This document shows, in pieces, positions 20,603 through 44,600 of a stretch of 64,000 nt of DNA (position 1 is its first letter; every line of letters begins with the position of its first letter). Under the pieces are notes generated by a model. The model saw only the letters and a list, made by a program, of their open reading frames with translations. It did not search any database and was not told the origin of the DNA. The stretch covers positions 3,410,001 to 3,474,000 of the forward strand of contig OZ116712.1 in assembly GCA_964199315.1 (NCBI GenBank), given 5' to 3'. Position numbers and translations under genes: made by a program. The DNA comes from Orbicella franksi. Lineage: Eukaryota.

Positions 20603-23600
20603 TACTGCCAAACCGCTGAACGAAAGAACGAGCCAACGAACTAATTTAAATCAGAATCGAAATGGGAGAGAACACAAAATTTAACTTGCACTTGTAAATA
20701 ACATATCTAACACAAAACGTCATTTACTATCCTTTCCATAAATGAGACAGCCATAAAGCACGTAAGAAGCCGAAACTACCTTGAACAGTCAGCTTAGCAG
20801 AACAAGTAGCTTTTCCAGCTTTGTTCTTAGCAATGCAAGAGTACTCTCCCTGGTCAGCGGTTTCTACACGTGGAATACGCAGTACATGCACGCCATCTTT
20901 GTTCTTGTCAATCTTAACTCGACGTCCATCTCTGATTGGTTTGCCTCCTTTCTGCCATTCTACATCCGGGACAGGGGTTCCGGACACCTTAACTGTCAAC
21001 TTCACCTCCTCACCGTCCGTGACTGTTGTGTCTGTAAACTTTTGCTCGAAGTTTGGGCGGACCGTTACCTCCTGACGAGGTTTGGAAAGTCCTGAAGTTT
21101 GAAAAAGAGTTCTCTTTAGTGGTTTGTCACGTAATCTTGTCAAGCACATCTTGAAAAGTTTAGCCTAAATTTTTCAAGTTCGTCGTCGGTAATCTGTCAA
21201 TCTTCTCCATCCTTAACCATCCTTCCTTTATGGTTTATCATTATCTCTTTAGTGTTTTTCAATCTTAGTAAACTATTACTTCCTTCAATTTAAAAGTAGT
21301 TATACGCGTGGCCAAAATTATTCAAAATACCATGACTGTGCTCCTTTAAAGTGACTGCTATGTTCATGTTAAAGAATCTTTCCACCCTTCCCTCGAACCA
21401 AATTTTCGACGATTTTTGGCATATTATAGTAGAGATGGAGAAAGAGGAGGAAGACTGCCTTCACAGTTCAGAAAAGAAGACAATCGGTTGCCTCAACATT
21501 GTGTTGGATGTGATTTTCTTACTGGTGACATATTTCAACATAAAAGTTAAACTCTAAATCTAACCTGTCACAGTGATTTTACACGCCGTGCTGACGCTGC
21601 CCGCCTTGTTCGAGGCTTCGCATTTGTATTCTCCCGCGTCCTCTACCTCACAGTCTTTTATTACAAGTGTAAACCCGCTCACTGATTGGCTGATGTCAAA
21701 CCGCCCTCCAGCGCTGATTGGCTTATCATCCTTGAACCACTGGAACCCAGGTTCCGGCGTTCCCATCGCCCGGCATGCTAAGCGCACCGAACTTCCTTCA
21801 ACCGCTGACCTGTCGCGCAGTTTGAGGATAAACTCTGGTTCTCGAAGGCGTTCTTTTGGTTTTGCAGGCTCAGGCTTGGCTTTTGGTTCTGCTTTTGGTT
21901 GAGGTTTTGGCGCTGGTTTCGGCGGTGGCTCTGATTTCTCTACTTGAGCAGTTGCAGGGGCAATAGACGTCTCGATAACTGGAAGTGGTTTCTTCGAATC
22001 CCCGGGTGGTTTTGTCCTGAAAGCGAAAACAAAAATTGAAAATTGAAATCATACGAAGATCATCCAAATTCTCCTTACTAGTTATCATACAATTTCTACA
22101 ACCATCTTTGGCAGAATTTCGCCCTATAATCGAAACTTTTTTTCTCGAGACGTTCAAGCGCTCTTTCCAAAGTAATGTTCTTTGTTTCAAAACAAATAGT
22201 TCTCTTCCCTGGAGTTTCGAGTCCTATAAAATAAGACATCACAGACTTCGCTTCCGTTTTTTGTTCTTCCATTCTCTCATTATGAAATAATACTTTTAAA
22301 CAGGCTTCTCAAATTAGCAATATTCCTTCTGACACTTACTTCTCTTCTTCCGGTTCCGGTTCACCAGCAGACTCACTTTCCTCGTCTTCTGTTTCTGTAA
22401 CAAAGAAAATAATAAAACAAAAATTATAATTATACAATTTGAAACAAGTGCCAACAAAACAACAGGGAGAAATCTCCCTGCGTTCGCTGGCTTGTGAAGA
22501 TAATGCGAATATGATACGAACGATTTTAAAAGACATAAAAGGCTCATGCAATATCTGAATAGATAGAGAATCGACAATCATTCCCATATAGTTGAAGAAC
22601 AAACACACACACGAAAAACATCCCCTCCCCACAGCTCTCTTTCGGATCCGAACAGGTGATGACCTCTAATCATAGCTGATCTAGTTTTCAAGAACCCAAA
22701 CCAAACAGAAATTGAGATAAGCTAAATGCTATCCAGTGAATACTTTGTCTATTTTTACATGTCATCTTAGCGTCTGTTATATTTTGAAGTTTTTAGCCAA
22801 AAGTTACTTACGCAATACAAACAAATCCGCTGAGCAGTGTGCCTTGCCGGCGCTGTTCCTAGCCACGCACTTATACAAGCCTTCGTCACTTCCGCAGACG
22901 TCATCAATAACAAGCACCTGCCAGTCATCATCATCCTCAAACTTGTATCTTCCGCCCTCAAGCAGGGGTTCGTTTTCTCTGTACCACCGGATGTCTGGGC
23001 GAGGGTCGCCAATTACACGGCACTCCAATCTCGCGGTTTTCCCAGATACTGCGTCGACGTCTTGGAGCTTCTGGGTAAACTTTGGTGTTGTTCCTTCAAA
23101 CTCGGGCTCCATATCAGCTGGAAAAAGAACAATTTTTGTTCAAAACGTCAAAATTGAATTCGTAAAACACTGTAAAATGAATATCACCGCATGGAAGTAA
23201 TGCTCAAAAAGCTTTCATTAGAATGGTCACACACGGGGGTTACATCCACAGACTTAAAAGTTACAACCACCTTGTACAGGATAATAAACAGTACCAAATG
23301 AAAGAACTGCTCAGTAGCTTTCACACTAGGGTTTCATCCACAGACTAAAAAGTTAGAACCACCTTGTACGGCATAATAAACAGTACCACATGAAAGGACT
23401 GCTCGATAGCTTCACTTGAATGGTCACACACTAGGTTTTCATCCACAGATTTAAAGATAAAACCACGATGTCGCACTGTTTGAGACTAACAATTAAGGTT
23501 GGTTTTACTCACGTTCAACATTGAGGTAAGCATTGCTCTCCACCTGACCAAACTCATTTCGTGCCACAAATCGAATGTGCCCTGCATCTGTCCTCTTGGC

Positions 23601-26600
23601 GTCCGAGATGGTCAGAGCAAAAAGATCCTCGTCACGTTCAGAGGTAAAACGAGGCCATTTACTGACAAGTTTTTCATCTTTGTACCACTCAGCTGTCAAG
23701 GCGCTACTGCTCACCACGCGACACGCAAACTTTGTCACGCCACCTTCCTTTACGTCACGGTTGCGTAACACAAGCGTGATGTCCGGGGGGAGCTTGGGTG
23801 GGCCAGAGGATTCGGCGTCGACTTCATCTTCAGTGTCATCTGACAGCATGTCAAATGTCGACTCACTGGCAACAAAAAGAGCATTTGCAATGAATATATA
23901 GTTGTTTCGTTTCCACAAAATAACAAAACTTTCCCGTTTACAGTAAGTCATGTTTCATTCAACTGACCGTTTTCGTGCTTTGAAAACAAAGGAGAATGAA
24001 GAGAATTAACTGCCACATTATTCAACGAAATTTAAATATTCACTTACCGAGAAAGACGCCTCTCATATTCTGACCCACTTGCAGAATCGAAACCATGACC
24101 TGTGAAACAAGAAGGAAATAAAGGAAATAAAATTTATATGCTAAATCTACATATATACTCGTTAAGACAGCATGACTAAGTAGAGAATAAAGTTTGAGCT
24201 GGGAAATATACCGTGGGAAGTTTGCTTCAACTCGGTCTTGTGAACATGGCGTCTATTTGAAACCGGAGTTACTCGCGGAACGGTGTTTTATAGAGAAAAT
24301 ACGGCAATAACACTGTGTTGAGAATCACAGAACACACTAAAGAATCTGCCCACGGATGAGTACCTTAAAAATTTAGCCAACTCGTCTTTCAAGTTTTGTC
24401 ATTCTCAATAAAGCAAGCACTAAGGGCGCTATAAGCATGACGCCTGGTTACGAAAGAGGACATGTTAAAACGATACTTACTCTCTATGAACAGCTCTGCA
24501 CTGCATTGAGCTTTCCCAGCTGGATTACTTGCTACACACTTGTAGCGTCCTCGGTCAGAATGCTCTGCTTCTCTGATCAGTAGTGAACACAAGCCGTCAT
24601 CTTCAAATGTGAACTTGATCCGTCCACCCTCGCGGATCACTCGGTTGTCCTTGTACCAGTCAACCTCGGGCTCGGGGGTTCCTGGATAAATACACAAAGG
24701 AAAAAACTTTCTGTCACAAAGAAAAACTCCAAACAAACAAAGCACTCATAATTTATCTTTCCATGGTTAAATACATAATTGTGACAACTTTGACGATTTT
24801 ATTGGTGACCGTGTTTCTATGCTTGTGTTGCCATCATTGTTGTTGTTTGATCCAGTAGTCTTCACTGGAACATGGATTTTATACCGACTGTTCCCAAGTT
24901 GAAACCTGTGAAAATTCGCTTTTGTTGCTGCTACTTTCACCTATGACTCTGCTGTTGCTCCTGCTGCCAATCACTAGCACATTGTTTACCACTTTTTCCC
25001 AAGTGGGAATTTCAGATACATTGTTTTAACAATACCCGAATGAACACTGTACTCAAATTAAAGTTTTAGACCAACATTCTCAAACGAGCCTCAGTAAAAT
25101 AGTCCGTACATACATACATATACATTTTATTTGTTATCAAATTAAAATTACAATTGTAACATGCCCGCGGATAGCTGAGCTAATCTAGGCGGGTCATGTT
25201 TAGACGAGTTATTAATATACAACTAGGTACAACCAAATACAACTGAAGGTAACAAGAGAACTAAAGAGACTAGAATTGACAACGATGACTAAAGACAACT
25301 AATAAACTAACGATATTACAAATAATAATTAACAACAGTTACGACGAGAGACTACAGATACACTAAAGCGAAATTATTGAGTATTAATGAATACATACTA
25401 GGAGGAAAATAAATTCAGCTTTACTTTTTGAACGATTTCTGCAAGATCAATATAACAGTCTTCTGAAGCTAGGATTGCAAAAAGTTCTTGTTCTTGTTCA
25501 CACAAGCACACCGAGAAAAGTAAAATCTACTTATTAAAGAAGAATTACCTTTCACACGAACATCAAACTTAGCAGCACTTCCTTCTACGATCTCGACGTC
25601 CTGGATTCTTTGGATGAACTCGGGTTTCACAGCCCCAGCAGGAACCGGTTCACGTCTCAATACAAGCTTCTGAGCTGTGAATTAAAAAGAAGCAAAATTT
25701 CATTTGCGAAAACTCAACCGTTACACTTTGTAAAAAGATGTTATGGGCAGGCTAAACTTGCGGCCTTTTTCCTCAAGGCAATTAAGTTCAATAAAGCCCT
25801 ATTTAAACATAAGCTGCTTTTTGTCTTTCCGAGAAAAACGAAGTGCGATTTTCTGTACATCGAATTTGTTTTTTCTTACTTGTGTAGATTAGAGAACGTT
25901 TAAGGAGCTATATCACGGTTTGCGCACCTTGAAAGTCTAGCTTAAACTTATCAAGTTCGTCGTTGTGTAATCCGTGTTAATCTTTTCAATCCTTAACCAT
26001 CCTTGTTCCTTCATGGTTTAATATTATTTCGTTGGTGTTATTTTATCTTTGTAAACTATTATTTTCAGATTGTCTTCAATTTAAGGGTACTTTTGTACGT
26101 CGTGGTCAAAATAACTCAAAATTCCGTTACTGAGCTCCCCTAAGCCAAGAAACCTACCATTGACTTTGACAATGAATGGCTTCACAGCTGTCCCAGCAGG
26201 GTTTGTAGCCTCAACTCGGTAATTTCCTGAATCTTCCGGTACCGCCTTGGGAATCAACAGAATGTTTTTGTCTCCCACCATCTGTAGCTCGACTCGCTTC
26301 ACTCGCCTAGCAAGACGATTTTCTTTAAACCACTCAACTTGCGGCGTAGGTTTGCCTTTCGCTTGAACAACGAGCTTCACCGGGGCACCCTCCCACACCT
26401 CAAACAGCTGCTCTTCCGTACCTTGGACAAACGTGGGAGCAAATTGTCTGTCACTGACCTTAAGCTCTGCTGCGCAAGTGACTTCACCTGCAGTGTTTCT
26501 CACTTCACACCTGTATTGGCCACTGTCTTCTCGTCGGCAGTCACCAACAGTAAGCGAATACCTCTGCCTTTCGGAGTCTTCATCCATGGTGTACTTCCCT

Positions 26601-29600
26601 TCGTTCTTCAACAGCATTTTCCTTAAGTACCATTGTACTTCGGGCGAGGGTTTGGCGGTAACCGAAACTTCAAACACCGCTTCATCGCCCTCTACAATTT
26701 CCACATCCTCCATCCTTGTCTTAAACTCCGGTTTACTCGCGGATTCACTTACAACAAGCCGTGTTCTGCATGAAGCTGTTCCAATCTTGTTCTTGGCTGT
26801 GCACTGGTATTCCCCACTGTCTTCAGGTCTGACGTCCGAGATAACAAGAGAACACAGCTCTCCATCAGACTCCATTTGAACCCTTCGACTTTCGTCTATA
26901 GGTCGGCCATTCTTGGTCCATTCAATGTTCGGTTTAGCTGTTGCATTTAGACGACATTTTAGTGTCGCTGTACCGCCAACAGTAGCTTGTGTTTCCTCTA
27001 AAGGTTGAGTGAATTTTGGTGCAGGTTTCTTGCCTACAAAATAAATAAAAATTCTGTCTTCAGATTTGTGTTTTTCTTTTAAAAGGAAGGTAAGTCATTG
27101 GGTCTAGTAGCCCACAACTACAAGAACTCTGTTTCGCTTTCTGTAGCACGATGAACCTTAAGAGTATCACCTCCCTCCTGATAAACCCTTCATCCATCGT
27201 AGGTCGACATTTTTGTCCGTGATTTAATTCACAAATACTCATTCAAACCACCTGAGTACCGTGGGAAAAGTACTTTGCCAAACAACAAGAGATAAGGACA
27301 GAGACGTGAGACCAGGTTCTCAAACCTCTCCTAATTTACGATACATCGCAAATATCTTTTACTCAACAAAGAGCAATTGCATGTGAACAAGCTAATCAAG
27401 CAGGGCATTAAAACTCTCGTCAACACAAGACAAACAGAAGATAACTTACCTTCGATATTAACTTGGAAGGTCTTTGTCGTTGTACCTGCAGCACTCTTTG
27501 CAACACACTTGTAAACTCCCGAGTCTTCAGGGACAACAGAAAAGATTGTAACACCAAATTTATTTCCTCGAGCTGATAAGTTCACGCGACTAGTTCTTTT
27601 TAACAGTCTATCATCCTTGTACCATTCCACGTCTGGTCTCGGATTCCCTTGAATAGTAACATTAATCTTAAGTTCGTCGCCTTCGTTAATCTCTATGGGT
27701 AAATCGCCGTATTCATCGGAGAACTCTGGCGCAATTTGTCTCTCTTTTACTTCAAGTCGAGCAGAACACTGCATTCTTCCAGCCTCGTTTGCCGCTACGC
27801 ACTTGTAGCTTCCGAAGTCATCCATCGACACATTCTCAATTAACAGTGAATGTGAATCTCCGTCGTCGGACTGTACCGTTTTAAACCTACCTCCGTCAGT
27901 GATAACTTTTCCACCCTTTGACCATTCAGTTACAGGTTTTGGGTTACCCAACACCTGGACATCAAAGCGCGCCGTATCGCCCTCGATAACTTCAATGTGT
28001 TTCATCTTCTCTTTAAACTCCGGCATGACAATGGCTTCATTTACAAGAAGCTCTGCTGAACAAGAGGCAGTACCATGTTCATTTGTCGCCACACATTTAT
28101 ACTCGCCTTCGTCGTCAGCAACAGTGTCAGAAATTGTCAGTCTGCAGACTTCAGAGTCGAAATAAGTCTTGATTCGCTTGCTTGATTTCACGGGTTCATC
28201 GTCCTTAAACCATTCAATGCTAGGCTCTGGTTTTCCATGAACCCAACATTCTAACTTGGCTGCGCTACCTTCAACTACTTCTACTTTCCTGAGAGGCTTG
28301 AAAAACTCTGGTGCCGTTCCTTTAGGTTTCTTAGCTGTTTTAAAGAGGAGAACACATAACGCAATTGACGTAAATTATCTTCTATCTGGCCAAACTCCAG
28401 ACAACGCAGGATGAATCAGGAACAGTATTATGTAACTAAGAATAAACAGAGCCACATGGTACCCACACGCTATATAGCCTACGATGTACGGTTATTAAAC
28501 GAAAATAATTTCCCGAGTCTTGCAACACTTCCAGAAAGAAACATCAGTATGTCAAAAGCATTTAGTCAGGAAATTCAAAATTACAAAATCGCCATGGCAA
28601 CGTTTGGCGCGAAATTTCTCGATACAATAAAAAAGCGAAAAGCCCGCGATTGTGAGCGTTATTTGTCACCAATGATATTGAAAGGTAATCAAATGGTATA
28701 CTCGAAAAATAAGGAGATAATTTCACTAACGTTTTGTCAAGAGTTTAAAAGTTACAAGAATTTTGACAAAACGCGCGTGAAATTATTTCCTTCTTTCACT
28801 CGTCAACATTTGATTATCCAACCAATTTGAAAAAGGCTCTCTTACGTTCAAACTACATAAGTCTCTTCTCTTGCTTACCTTCTATTTCAATCGTAAACGT
28901 CCGCGTTGCTGATCCCATTTTACTTTTCGCCTCGCACTTGTACACTCCAGAATCAGCCGGTTTGGCGCTATAAATTAGAAGTGTGTATTTATCTCCTTTA
29001 ACCAGTGTGGTAATATTCGACGACTTTCTCACATTAAGTTCATCTTTGTACCACTGGACATCTGGAGCAGGTTTTCCTCGAATTGTGACCTCTAAAGAAA
29101 CCTCGTCTCCTTCTTTAAATTTTATAGGAGCTTCACTGAGTTCATCAGTAAATTCTGGAGTTGTTAGTTTTTCATTAACGTCTAATTCTCCACGGCAGGT
29201 TGCTTTTCCTGCCTCGTTAGAAGCAACACATTTGTAAGTCCCAGCATCGTCTAAAGTTGTTTCATCGATAATCAAAGAGTGTTGTTCATCTCCTTCCCCA
29301 GTTTTAACCGTAAATCTTCCTTCGTTTTTGATTGCTTGAGTTCCACGGAACCATGCGATGTTTGGCTCGGGATTTCCAGAGACTCGCACATCAAACTGAG
29401 CTGGCTCGCCTTCGCTGACTTGCATACTTTTCAGTTTTTCTTTAAATTCCGGCGCCACAATGGGTTTAGTTACGAGAAGTTCTCCTTGAGTAGACGCTGA
29501 TCCGAGATCGTTTTTAACCACACATTTGTAGTCTCCACTGTCATCTGTGTTCGTTTCAGTGAATGACAGCTGGCACATGTCGCCTATGATATCAGCTTTG

Positions 29601-32600
29601 ATCCTTCGACTAAGCTGAACTGGTGTTCCGTTTTTAAACCATTCTGCTGTTGGTTCGGGCGTGCCCGTCATGCGACATTTTAATCTCACAGGGTTACCCT
29701 CCACAACCTCTATTGCCTTTAACGGCTGCGTAAACTGTGGGGCTACTCCCTTTGGTTTCTTTGCCTTTTTGCCTGAAAGAAAATTAGGTAAATTGTATTA
29801 GAGTCCTAACAGACAGATGCTAGCATGGTGAAAACTATAGATCTCAGAAGTCCTGCAACGTTGTTACTAGTACTTGCACTACTAGTGCATTTCGAGCGGT
29901 TTTCACTTGAGTATCGAAAAGTAATTGGTCTTACGTCACTTGGCTACACGATTTGCTTAAAAAACTCGCGCCACTTTTTCATCCAATCAGAAGTAAAACC
30001 AAAACCAATCGTGACTTGTTCGCTCGCGTCAGTTACAAAAAATTACTTCGTGTTTTGATTGGTTCACTGCATTGTCTGTGTCCTTTGTGATTGGCTAGAG
30101 TGATTACTTTGGTTTTCGTTTTACGACACTCAATTGAAAACCGCTGTATGCCAAACTAAATGATTTCACAACAATTATTCTGTCAGTGTTATATATCTTC
30201 CTCATTAAGTCTTCAGGTTTCTTTATCTAATTACACCTAGCACGCGCTACCTATACTACGATAATGTGTGCCCTATGTACATTTACGGACCAACTGTCCT
30301 ATTAAAGAGAGTTAATGATCTTGATTAAGATCTCCAAGAATTGACATCGGTAAAGGTACTCCTTAGCAGCGTGACATGACCCAATTAATACAGATTGATG
30401 TGACTATGACTACCACTTCTTTTTCCTTATTTACGCTACTCCCATGCTTCGTCCATTCCAAAAGGAAGCCGGCTAAACAGAAGATAAACTTGATCGCGTG
30501 ACTACGGTGAAGCACACTGCAAACATACCTTCGATGTTGACTTCAAATGTCCTTGTAACACTTCCTGCCTTGCTGCTGGCCACGCACTTGTACAAGCCAG
30601 AATCATCTGGAGTGACATTCATGAGAACAGCGGAAAACTTATCCCCTCGTGACTTGATGTCGACACGACTTGTCTTCCTCAGGGGCTTGTCATCCTTGAA
30701 CCATTCAACATCTGGGCGTGGTTTTCCCTTCACTGTCACATTGAGCGTCACCTCGCCACCTTCGACAGCAGTGATGGGGCCTGTCTCCCCCTCATCATCA
30801 AACTCAGGAGATGCCATTTCCTCTTGTAGTTTAAGCTCCGCTTTGCAGGACACTTCTCCAGCTTCGTTATTGGCTTTGCAGGTGTATGTACCAACATCGT
30901 CTGGAGCCACTTTGTCGATAACAAGTGAGAAGAGGTAATCTTCTTCATCGTCAATGAAAAGAAACTTTCCAGCGTCCTCGATTTTCTTAGTTCCTTTGAA
31001 CCACTGCAGGGTTGGACTAGGACTGCCTGACACACGCACATCAAACCTTCCCTCTTCGTCTTCAGCCACCTCAATGTCTTTCATCGCTTCGGTAAACTCT
31101 GGTTTAGTAGCAGGCTCGTTGACAAGAAGCTCCGCCGTGCAAGACGCTGATCCCAGCTCATTCTGAGCAACGCACTTATAATCTCCTTCATCGTCCAGAT
31201 CTGCCTCGGTGAAGGACAAAGAAGCAACTTCCCCATCGAAGTCGTCTTTCATCCGTTTGCTAGTTTTAAGGGGTTTGCCATCTTTGAACCATTCGATGGT
31301 TGGTTGCGGGGTTCCTTTCACTGTGCATGCAAGCTTAACTGCTGCTCCTTCAGATACCTCCACTGATTCTAGGGGCTGAATAAACTGTGGTGCAGTTCCT
31401 GTTGGTTTCTCAGCTGAGGAAAGACCGAAAAATGTGATAATCGACATCAGAAGGGAATTCATGGAAAGTCCCGTCATTTTTTAAAAGGGTGGAATCACAA
31501 CACGTAAAACAATGATTCTTCGGGAATCCATAGTCAAAGAATTCCTGTCAGTAGTTTTTAACAAATATCATAGTCTGTGCGCTCATAAAATCTACCAAAA
31601 TATGTTTTTGACCATATCTGATGTGTTGATAAGCAGACAGCAAGATTTCACAACCGTCTTTAAAGATTAACTTATTAACGGTCGTGGTAAACGTAGAAAA
31701 ATGCAAGGAAAGGCATCTACAACTCTCAGATTTCATCACTAACATCTTATTCCAGATCCCCCGTCGGCTAATACCAAGACTTCCCCAATTGAAATGAAAA
31801 TTTTCTTTTAACTAAAAAAACCCTTTGCAGAATTATTTTAAAGCCGTTTTAACCTCTGAACAATGGCGCAAAACATAGATAATTACTGTTTACATCATAC
31901 CTTGAACTCTGACATCAAATGTCCTGGTAACTGTGCCCATCTTGCTTTTAGCTTCACACTTATACACTCCGGAGTCTTCAGCCTTCACGCCAAGAATCAC
32001 CACAGAATGTTTGTCTCCACGAGCCTTGATGTCAAGTCTGTTGCTTTCACGAAGGGGTTTGTCATCCTTGTACCATTTGACATCAGGCTTGGGTTTTCCA
32101 TTGATTGTTACATCCAAGCTCACCTCTCCACCTTCGGTCACTGTTATGGGGGCATCTAACTGATCTTCAGATATTTCAGGAGCAAACAACCTCTCCTTCA
32201 CGATGAGGTCGGCTCGGCATGTGGTCTTACCTGGTCAAAAGGTTAACGATAATTAACGGTATTATTTTAAGTATCAAGCCAATAGGTGACTAAAACGGAC
32301 CCCTTAGTATTAATTCACTTTAACTAAACAAACGTCAAAGGAACAGTACTACGAAATCCAAAGGAACAAGGATGGTCAAGACTGAAGAAGATTGAGACGG
32401 ATTATAAACGATAAACCTGAAAAGATTAGAATGAACCATCCGTGACATGGCTCCTTTGCCAACATAATAAATGTAGTTGACATAATTATGTTAACATCCC
32501 CTATATGTAAGTAACAAAGATGGTAAACACTGGGAAAAACTGAGACGGATCGCGAACGAGAAACCTGGAAAGTTTAGAATGCACCATCCGTGACATCGCT

Positions 32601-35600
32601 CCTTTGCCAACATAATAAACATAACTACAAGGATGATTAAGATTGGGGAAGACTGATATGCATTACGAAAGACAAACTTCAAGAATTCAGAATATCCTTC
32701 AGCGCTTTCAGTCTCCTGCGAGAATTTCTTTAAATTACCAACAACTTAGTAAGTTGTGATCATGAGACAAGCAAACGGTTTTAACCAACCCTACGACAGA
32801 CAGTGTTTCAGTAATCAAACTCAACCCTACAACGTGTTTTAAGAAATGCCCTGTTCCTTACCTCCTTCATTTGACGCCACACACTTGTAAATCCCAGCAT
32901 CTTCCCGCTTAGCGTCACTTAATACAAGCGAATGTAGGTTGTCCTTTTGGTTCTCTTTGAACTCAGTTCGTTCATCGCTCTTCAGCTTGGTTGTTCCTCT
33001 AAACCACTCAACCTCGGGCACAGGGTACCCAGCCACCCGAGTATCAAACTGAACAGTGTCGCCCTCCATTACCTCGACCGTCTTGAGTTTATCCTTGAAG
33101 TCTGGCTTAGTTACGACCCTGATCGTCATGGAAGCAGCACAGGAAGCTGAACCTAATTCATTAGTAGCCACACACTTGTACTCTCCGTCATCGCCTGATC
33201 TTGTTTCTTTGATTGTCAATGAAACTGTTTGACCGTCACTTTCAAGTTTCACTCGTCGGTTCTCTTTTATGCGCACTCCCTTCTTGAACCACTCGATGTC
33301 AGGCTTAGGTTCGGCTACGACAGTGCACTGTAGTTTGGCCTCGCTGCCTTCTTTCACCTCCACAGGTTGAAGAGGTTCAGAAAACACTGGTGCTGTTCCG
33401 TCTGGTTTCTTAGCTGCAATTGGCAATCAAGAAAAACATGAGAAGCTGACAGACAAATGACAGGAAATAATCTTGTTGTATCGTCACAAAAACAAAATGA
33501 AGAAATCAGCCGAAGGTAACACAACGCAACTCGAGAGCAAGAAAAGCAGAAAACGGCACTGATAAATAAAAGTGACATTATCAAAATATTCTGAGCGTGA
33601 ATACAAGGTTCTATTCATTCATTTCCTGCAAGAATGATGTAACAGTAAATGTATTTATAGATTCCGTTTAGCACGAGACAAGCAAAAATAAACGAAACTT
33701 CAAATGTTAATGTTAACGTACTTGAAAAGCTCCTGTACAACGCAAGAAAGGCCTAACAACAATCATAGACCCTTCAAGCTATTCTCACAAGTATCTTTAC
33801 CTTTCACTTGCACATCGAAGGTTCTTTCTGCAACGCCTCCTTTACTGTTAGCCTGACACTTGAAAATACCGGAGTCTTCAGGGGTAGCACCCTTAATTAA
33901 AAGCGTGTGTTTACCATTCATCTCACCAACTTCCAAGCGATCACTGGCCTTGAGGTCCTTTCCGTCCTTGGACCATTCTACCTCTGGTGTTGGCTGTCCC
34001 TTGACGTTCACACATAGAGTAACATCTCCGCCTTCGTCTATGACTACAGGTGCACTCTCCTCCTCCTCAGCAAACTCTGGTGCAATGGTGATGTCCTCAA
34101 ATAGAGGCAGTGCACTTTCAGCGTCCTCAGCAATCTCGGGCGCGATAATTGTTTCTTCAACAACTAAGTTTCCCTTGCATGAAACTTCACCAAATTCATT
34201 GAAAGCAATGCACTCATACTCTCCACTGTCAGATGGTTTGGCATCTTCGATAACTAGCTCAAACAGGTCCTCCTCTATATCATCAATCAAAACAAAGCGG
34301 CCCTCGTCTTCGATTTTCTCCTTACCCTTGAGCCAGTCGACTTCTAGTGGAGGTGAACCAGTCACGCGGACATCAAACCTCGCTTCCTCTCCAGGCAAAG
34401 CACTGATGTTCTTAAGTTTCTCTGTGAATTCCGGTTTGGTTCCCGCTTCGTTGATAAGCAGCTCAGCTGTAGTCGACCCACTGCCAAATTCATTACGAGC
34501 AACACACGTATACTCACCCTCATCATCAAGCTCGCTTGGTTTGAACGTCAAAGAAGAAGACTTGCCGTCGAAGTTCATCCTGACGCGTTTAGATTCCTTC
34601 ACCTTCTCGTCATCTCTGAACCATTCAATATCTGGTTGTGGTTCTCCCTTCAGCTCACACTCTAAGCTCGCTGGTTCACCTTCCACTACTGTGATGTTTT
34701 CCAGAGGTTTGGTGATTTCTGGTGCTGTTCCTGTGGGTTTCTTTGCTGTGAAGACAGAATGTTAAGAAAACAGCACCATCATCTTGTATTTCTTTTGTCT
34801 TAACAATTAGTTCAGCACTTCAGGAAAAAAAAAATGAGTACATGTTATAAGAAAAATTGTTCAAGTTCTTAAAATAATAAAATTCTCTGGGGAGAGGGGA
34901 AGAGGTATTTTCAAACGACATTTTCAAAAGGCCACTTGCCTCACCTAGGCAGCGAGGGAGTTCATATGCTCCCTAACCTACCCTTACACGAAGTTAACAC
35001 AGTAACGAAAAAGTTAACAATTTGTAGCGTCATATTGTGTCCAACAGACATCTGAAGCGCACATTTTTTTGATCAGGAACTTGCATTTTCTTACTTGGAG
35101 TACCTTTCTAGATATTCTAACCTTAATAGTACTCCATCCCTCGGACTTCGCACTAAAATTAAAATAGCGTGAAAAAAATAGGTACACTGATTCGCATTGC
35201 AGCTTACGCGAACTGCAGCTCACCCAGGCCTCGTGTACAGCCCCCCTAACCTGTACAGACTTCCTTCAAACAATCGAAAATCATAATTTGTATCTGATTT
35301 CGGGTCTCATAGTTCAACATACACATTCCCCTCAGTGACTGCAATACACTTCTCTTAATGTTGATGATGAGAATTGTTAATGTTTCAAGAACAAAGAAGA
35401 AAGTCGCAAATTGATCCCATATGGCAATTAAAAGCACATACCTTGTACTTTGATATCAAATGTCCTGGTAACAGTGCCCATCTTGCTTTTAGCTTCACAC
35501 TTGTACACTCCGGCGTCTTCAGCCTTGATGCCAAGAATCACCACAGAATGTTTGTCTCCACGAGCCTTGATGTCAAGTCTGTTGCTCTCACGAAGGGGTT

Positions 35601-38600
35601 TGTCATCCTTGTACCATTTGACATCAGGTTTGGGTTTTCCATTGATCGTTACACTCAGGTTTACTTCATCTCCTTCAGTCACTGCAATGGGGGCTTCAGC
35701 CTGGGCTTCAGCAAACTCAGGAGCAAACAGCCTTTCTTTTACGGCAAGGTCAGTTCGGATTGTAGTCTTGCCAGCTTCATTCGCAGCCACGCATTTATAC
35801 ATTCCAGCATCTTCTCGTTTCACATCGCCAATCGCTAGAGAGAAACGATCATTTTCTTTGTCTTCTTTGATCTCAATCCGTTCATTATTAGTTAGTTTGG
35901 TTGTTCCTCTAAACCATTCTACACTAGGATCAGGATAGCCAACGACAAGCACATTAAAGGTAGCAGTGTCACCCTCCATCACATCAACCCCTTTCATTTT
36001 CTCTTTGAAGTCTGGCTTAGTTACGACCAATACTTTCAAACTAGCAGTGCACGAGGCAGAACCGAGATCATTACTGGCCACACACTTGTACTCTCCTTTA
36101 TCATCTGGCCTTGTTTCTTTAAAAGATATGGAAGCTGTAACTCCATCACTTTCAACCTTGACTCTTCTGCTCTCCTTCACTCTCACTCCATCTTTAAACC
36201 ACTCAAGCTTTGGCGCTGGCTCAGCTGTGACTGTACATTGAAGTTTGGCTGCAGTACATTCCTTCACTTCCATTGGCTGCAGAGGTTCTGTGAATTGTGG
36301 AGCAGTGCCCTCTGGCTGCTTAGCTGTAAGGATAAAAGCAGACAATAGTAACGAATTCTTAACAAAGACAGCTCTTATTAAACTCAGTGAGACATGTACC
36401 ATTGCCACTCAAGTATGATTATAATTAAATGTGTTTTTTTTCCTTGATGATACTCTTCCCATTCCCTTCATTAACCTGTCAAGTATTCAATTTTCAATAT
36501 TGGGACACAAAATCATAAAGGCAGACCACTGGAATAACTGCTGACGTTACTAAAATTAGATGACGGACAGTACCTGCAATCTGCACATCAAACACCCTCT
36601 CTAGAGAGCCTGCCTTGCTGCTGACTTTGAACTTGTACAAGCCAGAGTCACTGGGGACAGCTCCTCTTATTTTCAGTGAGTGTGTGTCCTCATTGATGCC
36701 AACATCCAAATGCTCATCCACTTGTACTGGTTTGTCGTCTTTGAGCCATTCCACTTGAGGTTCTGGCTGTCCTTTCTTCAACAGTACATTTAAATCAATG
36801 TCGCCTCCTTCTTCAGCAAGTATTGGTGCACTCTCAGCTTCTTCGGCAAACTCCGGAGCCACAAGGGTTTCTTCCACAGTCAGGTTAGCCTTACAGGACA
36901 CTTCAGCCAGCTCATTGAACGCAATGCACTCGTACTTTCCACTGTCTTCGGGCTTAACGTCTTCGATAATCAACGAGAAGCTTCCTTCCTCTTCATTGTC
37001 TAACAACGCAAATCGTCCTGCATCTTCCAATTTGTCATCTCCTTTGACCCAGTCAACTTCTGGTGGTGGCGACCCAGTTACAAGTACATCAAACCTGGCT
37101 TTCTTTCCCGCCTCGACACTCACGTTCTTCATTTTCTCCTTGAACTCCGGTTTAGCACCAGCTTCGTTCACCAGCAATTCAGCCTGGCTCGACACACTGC
37201 CAAACTCGTTACGTGCAACACACTTGTAGTCACCTTCATCATCAAGCTCAGTTTCTTTAAAATTCAAGGAGAATGTTTCATCGTCGCTCTCAGGCTTAAC
37301 ACGTTTGGACTCCTTCACCTTCTCGCTGTCTTTGAACCATTCAACAGTGGGCTTGGGTTGTCCGCTAATTTGGCATTCTATCCTGGCTGGTTTACCTTCT
37401 TCAACTTCAACTGTCTCGGCAGGTTTAATAACCTCGGGTGCCTTTCCTTCTGGACTTTTTGCTACAAAACAAAAGAACAATAAGCAACATCTAATCTCTG
37501 CAATGCCGTGGAAGAATGCGTAGCATAGGAGGCGATCCAAAAATAAGAACACGAAAAAACAAAATTGTTAACTTGATAATTTGCGTAACCAACTTCGTAT
37601 AGTTCTTTAATAACTGGAATGCTTCTCTCCATTCTTATCAGAGAACAGTCAAGTTCCAAATTGGCTGTTTCGATAGAAACTTAAAGGTACAGTCTGGACT
37701 ATCTAAAAGTGCTCTTAAATCTTTTCTAGTGTTTTTGCCCAGACTAACACTTTACTGTGTCCTTGTACAAATGAAAATCGACTTAGTTGTCAAAAAGCAA
37801 CCTACGACTGTGTTTCAAAACGGAAAATCGCGAAATACCATACCTGCTACATTGACATCAAATGTACGCGTGATAGTCCCGGCCTTGCTTGAGGCTTCAC
37901 ATTTGTATATCCCAGAATCTTCAGGGGTAACGTCCAAAATCACAAGGGAAAACTTATCACCGTTTTCATCGATCTTTATTCTGCTGGTTTTTCTCAGTTT
38001 CTTGTCATCTTTGTACCACTCCACACCCGGCACAGGCTTGCCTTTGATGCCCACACTCAAGCATACCTCATCCCCATCTGTGACGTTGACGGGAGCACTT
38101 TCCTCTTCGTCTGTAAACTCCGGCGCAATCATCTTTTCTTTCACTGCTAGAGCGGCCTTGGAACTTGCCTGTCCTTCCTCGTTGGCAGCAACGCATCTGT
38201 ACGTACCAGCATCTTCAGGCACAGTGTCCTCGATGATCAACGTAAAAATGCCCGCTTCTTCGTCGTCCATCATCACATAACGCCCTTCGTCATCCAATTT
38301 GTCCTTCCCTTTGAACCAGTCTACCACTGGAATTGGATTGCCTTCAATTGTGACGTCGAAACGTGCTGGTTCCCCCTCAGTGACATTCACGGGTTTCATC
38401 TTCTCGATGAACTCTGGTTTCTTGTTTGGCTCGTTAACGAGGAGTTCAGAAGCGCAAGACACTGTTCCGAGGTCGTTCTTCGCAACACACTTGTAAGCAC
38501 CTTCGTCTTCCAGCTCGGTTGAGAGAATCTTCAAAGTACACAACTCGCCATCAAAACGAATCTTTATTCTCTTGTCTTCCTTCACAGGTTCGCTGTCTCT

Positions 38601-41600
38601 AAACCACTCAATGGTTGGTTCTGGTACACCTGTCACTTTACACTGCAGCTTAGCAGGAGATCCTTGGACTACTTCCACCGGTTGCAGGGATTCTATGAAC
38701 ACTGGTGCAGTACCTTCAGGTTTCTTGGCTAAAGTGTATTAAGTATCAGGTAAGATTGATTAAAACAATTCTTCCCCAAATAAATTGAAGTCTGAGATTC
38801 AAACCCAAAAATTCCATATTGATAGCTCTACAAATCCGCGCGCAAAATTAAATAAAATTTTAAAAGAAAAAAAAAAAACAGAAAAACAACCAACCAGAAA
38901 GCATTATCTGGACGCCTGTACGGAATTTTTGGGGTCAAATCTGAAACTGCTCTCGAGGTGGGGAAAGAATAGGCTAGAATAAATTGGTAAGTACAATTTT
39001 AACTTTATTCTACCCATTTTGTTCAGTCTGTCCTGTTGAGACAAAGACCCTTGAAAGCAATTATGAGGTACTAAACGTTTCAAATTATTTTTCGTCATTG
39101 TTCGGGGTAACTTTGTGATAAAGTGGACTTTGGTTTCATTAACACAGTTGAAACAACAGTGCAACTGGAAAATTCAATACAAACATTCTGTAAGATACCA
39201 CCCTCTTAAGAACCTTTATGCATTAACTTCAATTGTCCATTAAAAATGAAACAGAGCAATCAAAACTCTCAAGGACGACGAAAGATTTTTAAAACATCTA
39301 GCATGAAATAAAGCACCTTTAACATCGACATCAAACGTTTTTTCTGCTTTACCACCCTTGCTCTTTGCTTCACACTTGTAAACACCGGAATCTTCAGGCT
39401 TGGCTTCCAATATAATGAGGGAGTGTTCCCCATCTTTGGCGTCCATCTTCAAACGACTTGTTTCCTGTAGCTTCTCCTCATCCTTGTACCAATCGACAGC
39501 AGGCTCTGGCTTCCCTTTCACAACAGTATTGAGACTGACAACATCACCTTCTCCCACCTTCACGGGGGCCGCTTCTTGTTCAGTGTCAAATACAGGTTCG
39601 GTGATGACCTCCCTGACAGCCAAGGCAGCCTTGCAAGACACTTGACCTTCCTCGTTTTCAGCTACGCACTTGTAAGCTCCTGCATCCTCTGGAAGCGTGT
39701 CGTTGATTGTCAGTGAGTAAGTGCCACTGTCTTCATTATCAACCATCTCAATACGCCCTTGATCTTCCAATTTGTCCTTGCCCCTGTACCAGTCAATGAC
39801 AGGTGAAGGGTGGCCAGTCACTTTCACAGAAAATTGTGCAGGTTCTCCCTCAGTGACATCAACAGGCTTCATTTTCTCTTCAAACGCAGGCTTTACGTTT
39901 GCTTCATTGACAAGAAGCTCCGACGAACAAGAGGCTGAACCAAACATGTTTTCAGCGACACACTTGTATTGACCCTCATCATCTAGTTCTGTGGTCGTGA
40001 TCTTTAAAGTGGCCCGTTCTCCGTCAAATCGAGTTTTGTATCTCTTCACCTCTGCCACGCTTTTACCATCTTTAAACCAAGCTATGTTCGGCTCTGGTGT
40101 CCCCGCGACCTTGCACTCCAACGTTGCCCCATTTCCTTCTGTTACTTCAACAGACTCCAGTGGTTGTGTAAACTTGGGGGCTTCACCTTGTGTCTTTCCT
40201 GTACCAAAAATACGAAAAAAAAATTCATAGCATTTCACCTCCACTGACTGTACACCTTTTGACGTTCTTCAACTTAGCATTTACCATCAGCAATCAACAG
40301 TCTTTGTTTACTTAATATTGAATAAAACACGTTAATTGTCCTATCAGTGATGATGAGGTCAACAGATTCCACAATGCAGACATTTCCCTTCTAGAGTATT
40401 ATCGTAAAAATGTACTTGGATTTCTACTCCAGTTACTCACTCAAACCACTTTCTCTTTCATCCAAGCACTCACTCGCTTTCTCATTTTCCACGCTGCATT
40501 AAACACACGTTTAATGCAGAAACATACGTTACTAATATTCATTTCACTCGCAACAGGTAATGAAGGAGATGTATTATAGTCCTGGTTCTTTCAATTTCAC
40601 AATTTTCGTCAAATCCTGAAAAATTCCAACTTTCTCAGCTTTTATCGTAGTGGTGAGATTTAAGTAGGATGTTCATTATCTTATTCAGCACTTAGCTTAC
40701 CTTTCACGTTGACATCGAAAGACTTTGTTGATATTCCCGCTGGGCTCGTGGCTTTGAAGGTATAAATGCCAGAATCTTCCGGTACCGCATGTTTGATATT
40801 CAGCGTGTACGTGTCTCCTTTAGTCTTTGTGTCAAGCCTACTTGTCTTTCGTACCGGCTTCCCATCCTTCAGCCACTCCACAGTAGGTTTGAAAGTTCCC
40901 GAGACCGCCACATTTAAGTCCACTTCGCCACCCTCGGTTATATCAAGGACTGAAGTCTCCGATTCTTCTGCGTCTTCTGGAGCTGCTTGTTTTCCTTTCA
41001 CTGTTAACTGTGCTTCACAGGATGTCTGGCCAACTTCATTTGATGCAACACACTTGTACGGACCAGCATCTCCAGCTTCAGTTTGCTCAATAATCAGTGT
41101 GAACAGGTCTTCCTCGATGGCATCTACGTGTACGAACCGCCCTTCATCTAATATCTTCCTTGACCCTTGGTACCACTCAACGTGAGGTTCTGGAATGGCA
41201 AAGATTCTAGCGTCAAAACGGGCTTCTTCTCCAGCGTCAACTACAAGATCGTCCAATTTCTTTGTGAAGACTGGAGCGGTTGTATCTCGGACAGGTCTTT
41301 CCTCGATTGGCAATGGTAACTCTACGTCCTGCACCTCGGAAGCGCTTACTGGCTGTTCTTGTATTCCGTCTGGTCCTACGTGACACAGAAAAGAATCCCT
41401 CACTCATACAGTGCATCAATAAATGAACAACAAGAACGTCAATAAATGGGTCTGAGGCAGACAAGAATACGACATTTTGCAGATCCAAAGCTACAGACTA
41501 GCTGTGTATCTTAGTATGAAGTGTTATTACTGAGAAACATTGAAAAGAACGGTTTGATTGTTTCACGTTTGTCATATTTAATGCGCCGAAATAGCATAAC

Positions 41601-44600
41601 ATATGAGACTAAAGAAAACTGTAGCTATAATGGAAAGAAAGATGATGGTCGTAGAGGGTCACACCGACTCTCAATAGCAAGTGTGCATGAAGACCAGAGA
41701 GTATGTAAATGAATTACATGTACATACGAGTGTCTTTAATTTACATAAAATACCTTACTTATAGACGATACTGCAGTGATATACCGACACATTGAACAAT
41801 GTTTCCCTTTACAGTAAAGCCCATAATTTAGGAGTACTGAGAAGAAACTGAAAATCAAGTGCTCTCACCAAATGAACTAAAAACATCTGCTAGAAACCAA
41901 CTTACCTTCAATGTTTAGAAGGAATTTCTTAGTGATAGTTCCCATCACGCTAGATGCAACACATTTGTATGTACCAGAGTCAGCTGGAGTCACGTGGTAA
42001 ACCATTAGTTTGCAGTGATCAGGATCCTGTGAGATCTCTAGATGAGAGTCTGACACAATGGGTTCCTCGTCTTTGAACCATGCAACAGATGGCGAGGGTA
42101 AGCGGCCACTGTTCATAACCATGCACACATTATCTCCTTGAGAGCCCTCCATGGGGACCTGAAAAGAGAGGAATTTAGATATTGTACTTTGTAAAGGACT
42201 TGTCAAACTAATAAAAAATTCACCAAGTTTAAACAAAAGAAATCATAACCATGACGTTAATTACTCCTTAGTCTCATTTCCGATTGAGAAGATAATCAAA
42301 CACTCAAAACGCGTCATATTTCCGATCCTCTTCTGAGCGTTTGAAACGTAATGAAACTCTGTCTGTCATGCATATTGCATCTGCTTTCCAAGACATTGTC
42401 CGGCTTTCGGAGCTGTTTCTATAGAACCTGACCATATTCGTATTCTCGGTATTGGACTGGAACTAGCTTGGAAAGGAGGCTCGTGCGGGGGAATGTCATT
42501 AAAAACAGATTAAAGTCATTTGCATTTTAAAAGATTCCCCGCATTGGCCTCAATTTCAAGATAGTTTCAGTCCAATACCAGGAATACGAATATGGTTTAT
42601 TGCAAACTCGTTCTAGATTAACTTGGGATTCCATTCATGTCCACATGAAACATTTTTTTTCCTTACTTCTTCCATTTCTTCCTTAAACTCAGGTGGGACG
42701 GTACTACGAGTGACAGCCAGCTCACACGTACAATTGGCAGTTCCTGCTTCACTCATAGCCACAACCTTGTAGCTACCAGAATCCACCACTCGGCAATCTT
42801 CAATCACCAAAGAAAACAACTCCTTGTCATTGTCATCAACGTCATCGATTATGACAACACGACCTTTATCTTCAAGCTGGTGTCCATCCTTGAACCATTC
42901 CACCACCGGTTCAGGGTCTCCTGCAATGCGGACATCAAATCGAACCACGTCACCCTCGTTTGCCTCCATGTTCTTCAGAGGTTCCTTAATCAGTGGCATG
43001 GTCACACCTTCCTCCACAATCAGTTCAGATTGGCAAGCTACTTTACCAAACTCATTCTGTGCAACGCACTTGTACTCCGCTTCGTCGTCCAATTCTGTGG
43101 GAGAGATCACAACCGCAAAGACGTCGCCCTCGTTTTCAATCGTGATTCGATCATCTTCTTTCAATGGTTGATCGTCTATGTACCAGGACACGTCTGCTCC
43201 AGGTCCCACGCGGCATTCGAGCCTGGTGGAGTCGCCTTCAAGAACCTCCACTTCTTCTGGCAAGGGTGTTATGAAGTAAGGTCTTTGGTCTATTTATGAC
43301 AAAGATTAGAGTATGTCAAATCATAAAATAACTAAGATAGTACGCAACTGTGTTTAAATAAGGCTATGCAAACCCGGAAAAAGTGCTCTGCTGCCTAAAT
43401 CTCACACACTCCAATCAGTCAGAAAACAGCGACGCTGTTCAAAGTACACATGAATAGTGCATACATACCACTGATACCTGCACCATCTTCTACAGCTTCG
43501 CTCTTTTCTGTAAAAGAACACGGTATTCCTTTAGAACTCAAACCATGCAATTTTAGAATTTATATCAAGCCGCCTAACTCAGACGAGTCGAACATACACC
43601 AAAAAACATAAACGCCAAATTCCAAGGGTAATAACTACTTGCAGGGGATGGTAATTTAAGAGGGACAATAATTTTCTGTCAAGAATTTATGAAGACCTAC
43701 CAAATTTGCTAATTATCTGAGGCCTTATTCTTCATAAGGAAAGGAGAACACAATGATGACAGAAACTGTCATATCCAACAGGTCATATCTTTCAGCTTTA
43801 TTAGACTTATTAGTAGCCAAGCTTCTCAGGTTTTCCCTGTGCATTGCGTTACAGGTTGAGTCACGTTCATGGTCTATACTCTGCTCGACAATAGCTCCCG
43901 AAAAAGGAGCACAGTTACTATAAAAAGTGTGACACGTTGCTACAATACCTTCAACTAAAATCTGAGCTTCACACTGGTCTTGCCCAACTTGGTTCTTCAC
44001 AACACATTTGTAAATAGCTTCATCGTCGATTTCTACTGGATCCACCCTGAGTAAAAAGATGTCATCATCTGACAGTAATTTGCAGCGTTCATCTGCCTCG
44101 ATTACTTCGTCATCCCTGTACCATGTCACAGTGCGAGGTTTGGATGCAAGGACTTTGATTTGCAGTTCAAGCTTTTCTCCCTCGATAAGATCTTGGTCAA
44201 CAAACTTCTGAACCAATACTGGCTTTTTAAGTCTGAGTAAAGAAAGACGATTTTATTCCATAAGCATACCACTGATGAAGCTTAGAAAACTGGCTTGAAA
44301 ACCGAGTGAGATTCCCTAAAGGAAGAGAGAGTTCTACATTGAAATATAATTTGCATTTGATCATTTCTTTGATAGTGATAGCGATTTTGATTATGTTTTG
44401 ATACGATCTTTTTTTTGGGGGGGGGGGGGGGGTTCTTGCATAAAATTAAGCAGGCATTACATCTACAAGGCATAAAAAATATACTTACATCACTGGATCG
44501 TCATCCGACGGTTCTATGGATAAAAACAAAACACTTACAGTTTAACTCTTCACAGAATAAAACTAACAGCAGGGTGTAAGATACACGTGCAAAATGAAAG

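Follow-up and report, generated by a model that had tools for sequence, protein, structure and literature searches.

Ten old three-immunoglobulin modules form a super-repeat array, probably of fixed length, in a cnidarian obscurin/UNC-89-like gene of Orbicella franksi

Introduction

A stretch of the genome of the coral Orbicella franksi raises the question of what it means for one gene to carry the same block of three immunoglobulin (Ig) domains ten times over, exon after exon: is such an array a device of adjustable length, a ruler, or a rod of set length left by old duplications? The DNA analysed here (the window) comprises 64,000 nucleotides (nt) of contig OZ116712.1 in assembly GCA_964199315.1 (positions 3,410,001–3,474,000), and all coordinates below count from its first letter unless another locus is named. 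An original prediction, made from the letters and open reading frames (ORFs) of the window, placed the array at 26158–40198 and read it, by comparison with titin, as a three-Ig ruler, of an estimated 12–13 nm per module, whose length could be changed by skipping whole exons. We find a true super-repeat in a gene that belongs with obscurin and UNC-89, and favour, with a probability of about 0.7, a reading in which the array is an Ig rod of the protein connectitin, made of old tandem copies of a three-Ig exon and included constitutively at fixed length.

Results

Anatomy of the array

Between 26 and 58 kb of the window every long open stretch lies on the minus strand. Exon ends were placed by ag/NN acceptors and G/gt donors in phase 1, which resolves positions 40198–26158 into ten tandem modules (M1–M10) of 876–945 coding nt, all phase 1-1, with outer ends exactly where the original prediction had put them. 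All ten have lengths divisible by three, zero internal stops and canonical splice sites, and each consists of three I-set domains (Pfam), here called A, B and C; the motif strings that had been proposed for the three positions are the consensus of 11 modules. Module length is held at 292–298 residues, M5 excepted, and the inter-module introns, as computed from exon coordinates, measure 250–756 nt. The claim that each module is encoded by its own exon holds for nine of them and fails for M6, which is split by an intron of 631 nt into exons of 552 and 330 nt (882 nt together), such that ten modules make eleven exons. All features are on the minus strand:

M1, 39317–40198, minus strand: A-B-C module, 882 nt, phase 1-1
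M2, 37844–38728, minus strand: A-B-C module, 885 nt; closest paralogue M1 (59 per cent amino acid identity)
M3, 36574–37461, minus strand: A-B-C module, 888 nt; paralogue M5 (61 per cent amino acid identity)
M4, 35442–36323, minus strand: A-B-C module, 882 nt; paralogue M6 (73 per cent amino acid identity), C domain in concert with that of M6
M5, 33801–34745, minus strand: A-B-C module, 945 nt; 20-residue tandem duplication in the B-C linker
M6 exon 6a, 32862–33413, minus strand: domain A and most of B, 552 nt
M6 extra intron, 32231–32861, minus strand: 631 nt, GT-AG
M6 exon 6b, 31901–32230, minus strand: end of B and whole of C, 330 nt
M7, 30529–31413, minus strand: A-B-C module, 885 nt
M8, 28879–29772, minus strand: A-B-C module, 894 nt
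M9, 27450–28334, minus strand: A-B-C module, 885 nt
M10, 26158–27033, minus strand: A-B-C module, 876 nt; the most divergent and final module, final also in locus L005 and in Porites (see below)

A super-repeat of old copies

The modules were cut at their conserved linkers into 30 domains, and in a maximum-likelihood tree of these domains positions A, B and C each form one clade (support 99/99, 95/85 and 99/99, respectively). The tree requires two changes of position label, the minimum possible, compared with a mean of 14.7 for shuffled labels, and none of 200 shuffles came as low. Because the domains group by position and not by neighbour, as had been expected of them, the array is supported as a true exon-encoded three-Ig super-repeat, and the order A-B-C proves to be fixed in every module. 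Within all three clades the same partners recur (M3 with M5, M4 with M6, and M1 with M2), and the parallel pairing of M3 with M5 and M4 with M6 implies that at least one duplication copied a two-module block.

The modules have diverged far from each other, with 35–73 per cent identity in protein and 46–75 per cent in DNA. Synonymous sites between modules are saturated (proportion of synonymous differences, pS, 0.72–0.84), and the ratio of nonsynonymous to synonymous divergence (dN/dS) is 0.12–0.16 where it can be computed. The modules are old copies, each of them under purifying selection.

Identity of the gene

The nearest solved relatives of the modules, by sequence and by fold, are titin I65–I70 and I67–I69. 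A word-indexed search with M2 returned ∼35 ORF-sized proteins of ∼280–445 residues at 71–93 per cent identity, which represent the same exon in other genomes. One cluster has a named member, CAH3173173.1 of Porites lobata, a protein of 7320 residues annotated as 'Muscle M-line assembly protein unc-89', in which all ten modules lie contiguously (residues 840–3813) in the same order and with 65–85 per cent identity to M1–M10. Its Ig rod is followed by RhoGEF (5.8e-24) and PH (5.8e-19) domains and three protein-kinase stretches, and no Fn3 family is listed for it at E ≤ 1e-5. The protein starts with Ig domains; the N-terminal SEC14 and spectrin repeats that enter the definition of connectitin are not in that model, and in the coral gene they would be encoded upstream of the window.

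Coral and sea-anemone connectitins have been described as many Ig domains followed by RhoGEF, PH and SH3 domains and then three kinases (Hanashima et al. 2025; PMC12198301), and the cnidarian protein also goes by the name of obscurin/UNC-89 orthologue (PMC12198301; Steinmetz et al. 2012, as cited in PMC5253434). Given that the Porites orthologue, with its RhoGEF-PH and three kinase stretches, matches this published architecture, the gene is identified at the level of sequence as a cnidarian obscurin/UNC-89-like connectitin, and the titin framing of the array has to be given up. Titin proper is likewise rejected on the absence of Fn3 and PEVK, neither of which was found in any window exon tested with Pfam. 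Kettin/Sallimus Ig domains are spaced by linkers of ∼35 residues, and the linkers here (∼3–12 residues) are too short for modules of that kind.

Searches of wider scope gave family context. A profile search of a representative library returned nematode UNC-89 and vertebrate obscurin as its top named proteins (30–40 per cent identity per module), a search that ranks by total score, and hence by Ig count, and so informs on family and not on orthology. None of the bilaterian giants that this search returned, be they UNC-89, obscurin or titin-like, has the A-B-C periodicity. A protein-atlas search gave generic Ig clusters only, and a search with Porites residues 840–3813 found bilaterian UNC-89, obscurin and hemicentin (23–30 per cent identity) and no cnidarian isoforms.

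The signalling end may be glimpsed in the window itself. Between 14 and 11 kb there are weak single-exon matches to SH3 (1.6e-5) and RhoGEF (3e-4), below the curated cut-off, and the kinase domains lie beyond the window and are seen in the Porites orthologue. Short exons on either flank, at 62108–62236 and 12187–12396, match the same N-terminal DH segment of UNC-89-like proteins (BLAST; P0141 residues 310–343 and P0019 residues 326–358). This is consistent with two RhoGEF modules that bracket the Ig domains, with a Pfam match, a weak one, for the 3′ exon only; the ORFs of the 5′ flank (63–60 kb) gave zero Pfam matches.

Conservation across genomes

Six related loci (L001–L006) were fetched from ENA assemblies, and orthology was judged within each fetched stretch. 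L001, L002 and L004 each carry one-to-one orthologues of M1–M8 in unchanged order, and L003 carries those of M1–M7, the C domain of M7 lying beyond its stretch. L005 holds orthologues of M3–M10, and its array ends at M10 as it does in the window. These four loci L001–L004 also share the pattern that precedes the array, namely single A-like exons, A-B/C and B-C. In L004 an upstream B domain and M1 form one open frame of 454 residues (10001–11365 of that locus; B-A-B-C), and the upstream C domain and the intron that the window has there appear to be missing.

L005 comes from the closest genome, and its exons share ∼84–86 per cent DNA identity with those of the window, while intron similarity extends only ∼10–90 nt from the exons; in this comparison of window and L005, conserved control elements within the introns were not apparent. 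The M5 linker can also be followed across genomes: in the window the acidic B-C linker (34032–34160) is duplicated in tandem over 20 residues, and an enlarged B-to-C spacing of M5 recurs in Porites and in L001–L005 (351–480 nt compared with the usual ∼291–294 nt). Being common to all of these, the insertion is old, and its length varies.

The most distant relative fetched, L006 (43 per cent identity in the 13-Ig exon described below), departs from this picture. At 21400–24329 of that locus stand at least three tandem exon units of A-B with an 18-residue linker and no C domain, 91–97 per cent identical to each other with their introns included. These units look like recent tandem duplications, whether the array is young or has been homogenised, and the region is thus static in one lineage, with its ten A-B-C modules, and still growing by A-B units in another.

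The M6 intron and exchange between M4 and M6

The extra intron of M6 (32861–32231) is a GT-AG intron flanked by a 7-nt direct repeat, AGGTAAG, and its splicing restores the frame. It holds two copies of ∼111 nt (84 per cent identical) of an interspersed repeat (BLAST), which is also found in both orientations in introns at ∼17.2, 19.7, 21.2 and 25.9 kb; Tandem Repeats Finder, run on the M6 intron, reported no repeat. The orthologous intron is present in L002–L005, partly alignable with that of L005, and absent from L001.

In all six genomes compared (the window and L001–L005), M4 and M6 have C domains that cluster by species instead of by position, a concerted evolution that reflects repeated gene conversion. 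In the window the DNA identity of M4 and M6 rises from ∼69 to 86 per cent exactly at the M6 intron (35442–35772 compared with 31901–32231). In the five intron-bearing genomes M4 and M6 are 59–71 per cent identical in A, 66–69 per cent in B and 84–96 per cent in C, and the converted tract ends at the intron. In L001, which has no intron, B and C of M6 are both 97 per cent identical to M4. This pattern fits removal of the intron through conversion from the intron-less M4, with ancestral absence as the alternative. Together these comparisons suggest either that the intron sets a boundary to conversion tracts or that it was lost when M4 sequence was copied over it.

Related Ig exons upstream of the array

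The minus strand of the window holds a long run of ∼78 Ig matches. Upstream of the array they follow an irregular pattern that includes single A-like exons, and the further triplets which the original prediction had recognised at 53.7–54.6, 48.9–49.8 and 47.3–48.2 kb are real. The features related to the modules are as follows:

40702–41289, minus strand: partial module (B-C), immediately upstream of M1
41907–43290, minus strand: split module, with an A-B exon (43290–42709) and a separate C exon (42191–41907)
47324–48226, minus strand: upstream A-B-C module, 903 nt
48884–49762, minus strand: upstream A-B-C module, 879 nt
50145–52163, minus strand: 6-Ig exon in the order A-B-C-C-C-C, 2019 nt
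53701–54568, minus strand: A-B-C triplet at the 3′ end of a 13-Ig exon (57831–53701, 4131 nt)

When the tree is extended to every full-length Ig domain of the window (76), clustering by position holds and type C is still a distinct clade. Further members of that clade come from the 13-Ig exon (its last domain) and the 6-Ig exon (four domains in a row) and, with their C domains, from both upstream modules, the split module and the B-C exon. In the 6-Ig exon the C-type domain was amplified alone within a single exon.

Structure and linkers

An AlphaFold model of M2, with an 11-module alignment as its input, has a mean predicted local distance difference test score (pLDDT) of 93.5 and a predicted template modelling score (pTM) of 0.63. 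Confidence stays at or above 95 over the A-B junction and drops to 76 only at residues 201–210, which form the B-C linker. The A-B junction is tight and the B-C linker longer, and the two differ in charge: the B-C linker is acidic (mean charge −3.3 per 12 residues), and a slightly basic charge is found at both the C-A and the A-B junction. The C-A linker is in addition rich in proline and encoded across the exon junction. Modelled in this way, the linkers may cause stiff joints to alternate regularly with bendable ones.

Discussion

The history that we favour would begin with a single phase 1-1 exon carrying distinct I-set domains A, B and C, which was copied in tandem, with at least one later copy of a two-module block (M3-M4 giving M5-M6). 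The outcome of this old copying would be ten modules of ∼295 residues each, after which every module was kept by purifying selection and the order and number became fixed across related corals. The array would then be a constitutive rod or spacer whose length, some 30 Ig domains, is fixed, with the N-terminal region of the protein on one side and an SH3-DH-PH and kinase signalling end on the other. Regular stiff and bendable joints along this chain may be comparable in principle to those of the titin I-band Ig super-motifs. We lean towards an array that is constitutive and fixed rather than freely adjustable because the modules are conserved one by one, have diverged from each other, are separated by short and unconserved introns, and are all included in the Porites model.

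Several observations weigh against this fixed, module-by-module account. The concerted evolution of the M4 and M6 C domains means that the modules are not fully independent, and the two-Ig array of L006 means that the length of the region does vary between lineages. The protein from Porites, for its part, is known as a gene model, and it was the one named orthologue by which the window was placed in a scleractinian coral or a close relative. The inter-domain geometry behind the proposed joints was predicted with a pTM that denotes moderate confidence.

The strongest competitor keeps the adjustable part of the original prediction, namely a spring or ruler in which three-Ig exons are skipped by tissue or life stage and length changes in steps of one module. 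Skipping of whole modules would indeed preserve the frame, given that all are phase 1-1 and multiples of three; in vertebrates, titin makes such use of its 6-Ig and 10-Ig I-band super-repeats (PMC12241362), vertebrate obscurin has spliced Ig exons (PMC2196875), and L006 differs from the window in both unit and copy number. However, the symmetry is not special to the array. The other Ig exons whose ends were placed (4131, 2019, 879 and 903 nt) share the same phase, and the symmetry is therefore a trait of the family and not an adaptation of these modules. The ten modules are moreover present one-to-one in Porites, whose gene model includes all of them, and those in reach are present in five further genomes; they are diverged and each under purifying selection, which interchangeable cassettes need not be, and their short, unconserved flanking introns are unlike those of typical regulated cassette exons. 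On this balance we consider adjustable length unlikely.

It is also conceivable that the period of three is functional and not merely historical, in that each module would bind one filament unit, such as the ∼14.3–14.5 nm axial repeat of myosin or paramyosin thick filaments, much as the 11-domain repeat of titin corresponds to 43 nm. The retention of position-specific A, B and C identity and the tight conservation of module length speak for such docking, three Ig domains with ∼28 linker residues could by estimate span 12–14.5 nm, and UNC-89 is described as binding paramyosin through its SH3 domain (PMC4865318). Yet orthologous modules differ mutually by up to 60–65 per cent with no common surface evident, the upstream pattern is irregular (A-B-C-C-C-C, B-C and single A-like exons), and the unit of L006 is two Ig domains, all of which makes a docking role improbable. 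Anthozoans, moreover, are not known to have sarcomeres or striated muscle, and a sarcomere ruler in the sense of titin is unlikely for that reason. The specific case of a true ruler in non-striated muscle, with one module for each 14.3–14.5 nm step and ∼140 nm for the ten, is an idea to which we give little credence; if it were true, filament-measuring by giant Ig proteins would predate both sarcomeres and bilaterians.

An artefact, in the form of an assembly duplication or decaying exon copies, might be suspected because tandem repeats are easily misassembled and M6 carries an interruption, but DNA identities of 46–75 per cent are not those of collapsed or duplicated reads, all modules are open with canonical splice sites and low dN/dS, the same modules occur in independent genomes, and the M6 interruption is a clean frame-restoring GT-AG intron, so that divergence, open frames, selection and cross-genome orthology refute this already far-fetched idea.

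Regular Ig arrays are known from other giant muscle proteins, and one parallel in organisation is the titin I-band, where 6-Ig and 10-Ig super-repeats likewise arose by pure-Ig block duplication and their domains cluster by repeat position (PMC12241362); it is also the I65–I70 super-motifs of titin (PDB 3b43) that give the best match to a module in sequence and fold. The I-band has, however, a period of 6 or 10 with one exon per domain, whereas here the period is three and the whole repeat sits in one exon, and it belongs to another gene family and another phylum than the coral array. Its copy number varies among vertebrates and it is differentially spliced, whereas ten modules are fixed among the corals examined. 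The 7- and 11-domain super-repeats of the titin A-band are also regular and part of a giant filament-associated protein, where they act as a thick-filament ruler, but Fn3 domains are part of them and their period corresponds to the 43-nm repeat of myosin, and the Pfam-tested parts of the coral window have no Fn3.

Within its own family the array stands apart. In vertebrate obscurin (Young et al. 2001; PMC2196875) the layout is the same, with SH3-DH-PH and kinases after the Ig rod, and human obscurin is explicitly stated to lack a super-repeat and to have each domain in an exon of its own (PMC2196875). Unlike the coral array, bilaterian obscurin and UNC-89 showed no A-B-C periodicity in a scan for type-A, -B and -C domains. 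Connectitin is the same gene by Porites orthology, with many Ig domains, then RhoGEF/PH/SH3 and then three kinases, but the papers found on it speak of 'numerous Ig domains' only and mention neither a three-Ig super-repeat nor a number of modules nor the exon structure; the term 'super-repeat' occurs once in PMC12198301, where it refers to human titin. The gene itself is thus already known, as are the Ig super-repeats of titin (6 and 10 domains in the I-band, 7 and 11 in the A-band), and no published description of a three-Ig periodicity in this gene was found in the searchable literature. What is new, as far as that literature goes, is a pure-Ig super-repeat of period three with one unit per exon in a cnidarian member of the family, and its fixation at ten copies in the corals in which the full array is in reach.

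Ig super-repeats underlie the ruler and spring functions of titin, and the coral array adds a strictly periodic case in a cnidarian relative of titin and obscurin. The contrast with the young two-Ig units of L006 shows that this region may stand still in one case and be growing in another. Ordered super-repeats thus evolved in this family of proteins beyond the bilaterians and beyond striated muscle, and the defined modules offer a concrete way to approach what connectitin does in cnidarians.

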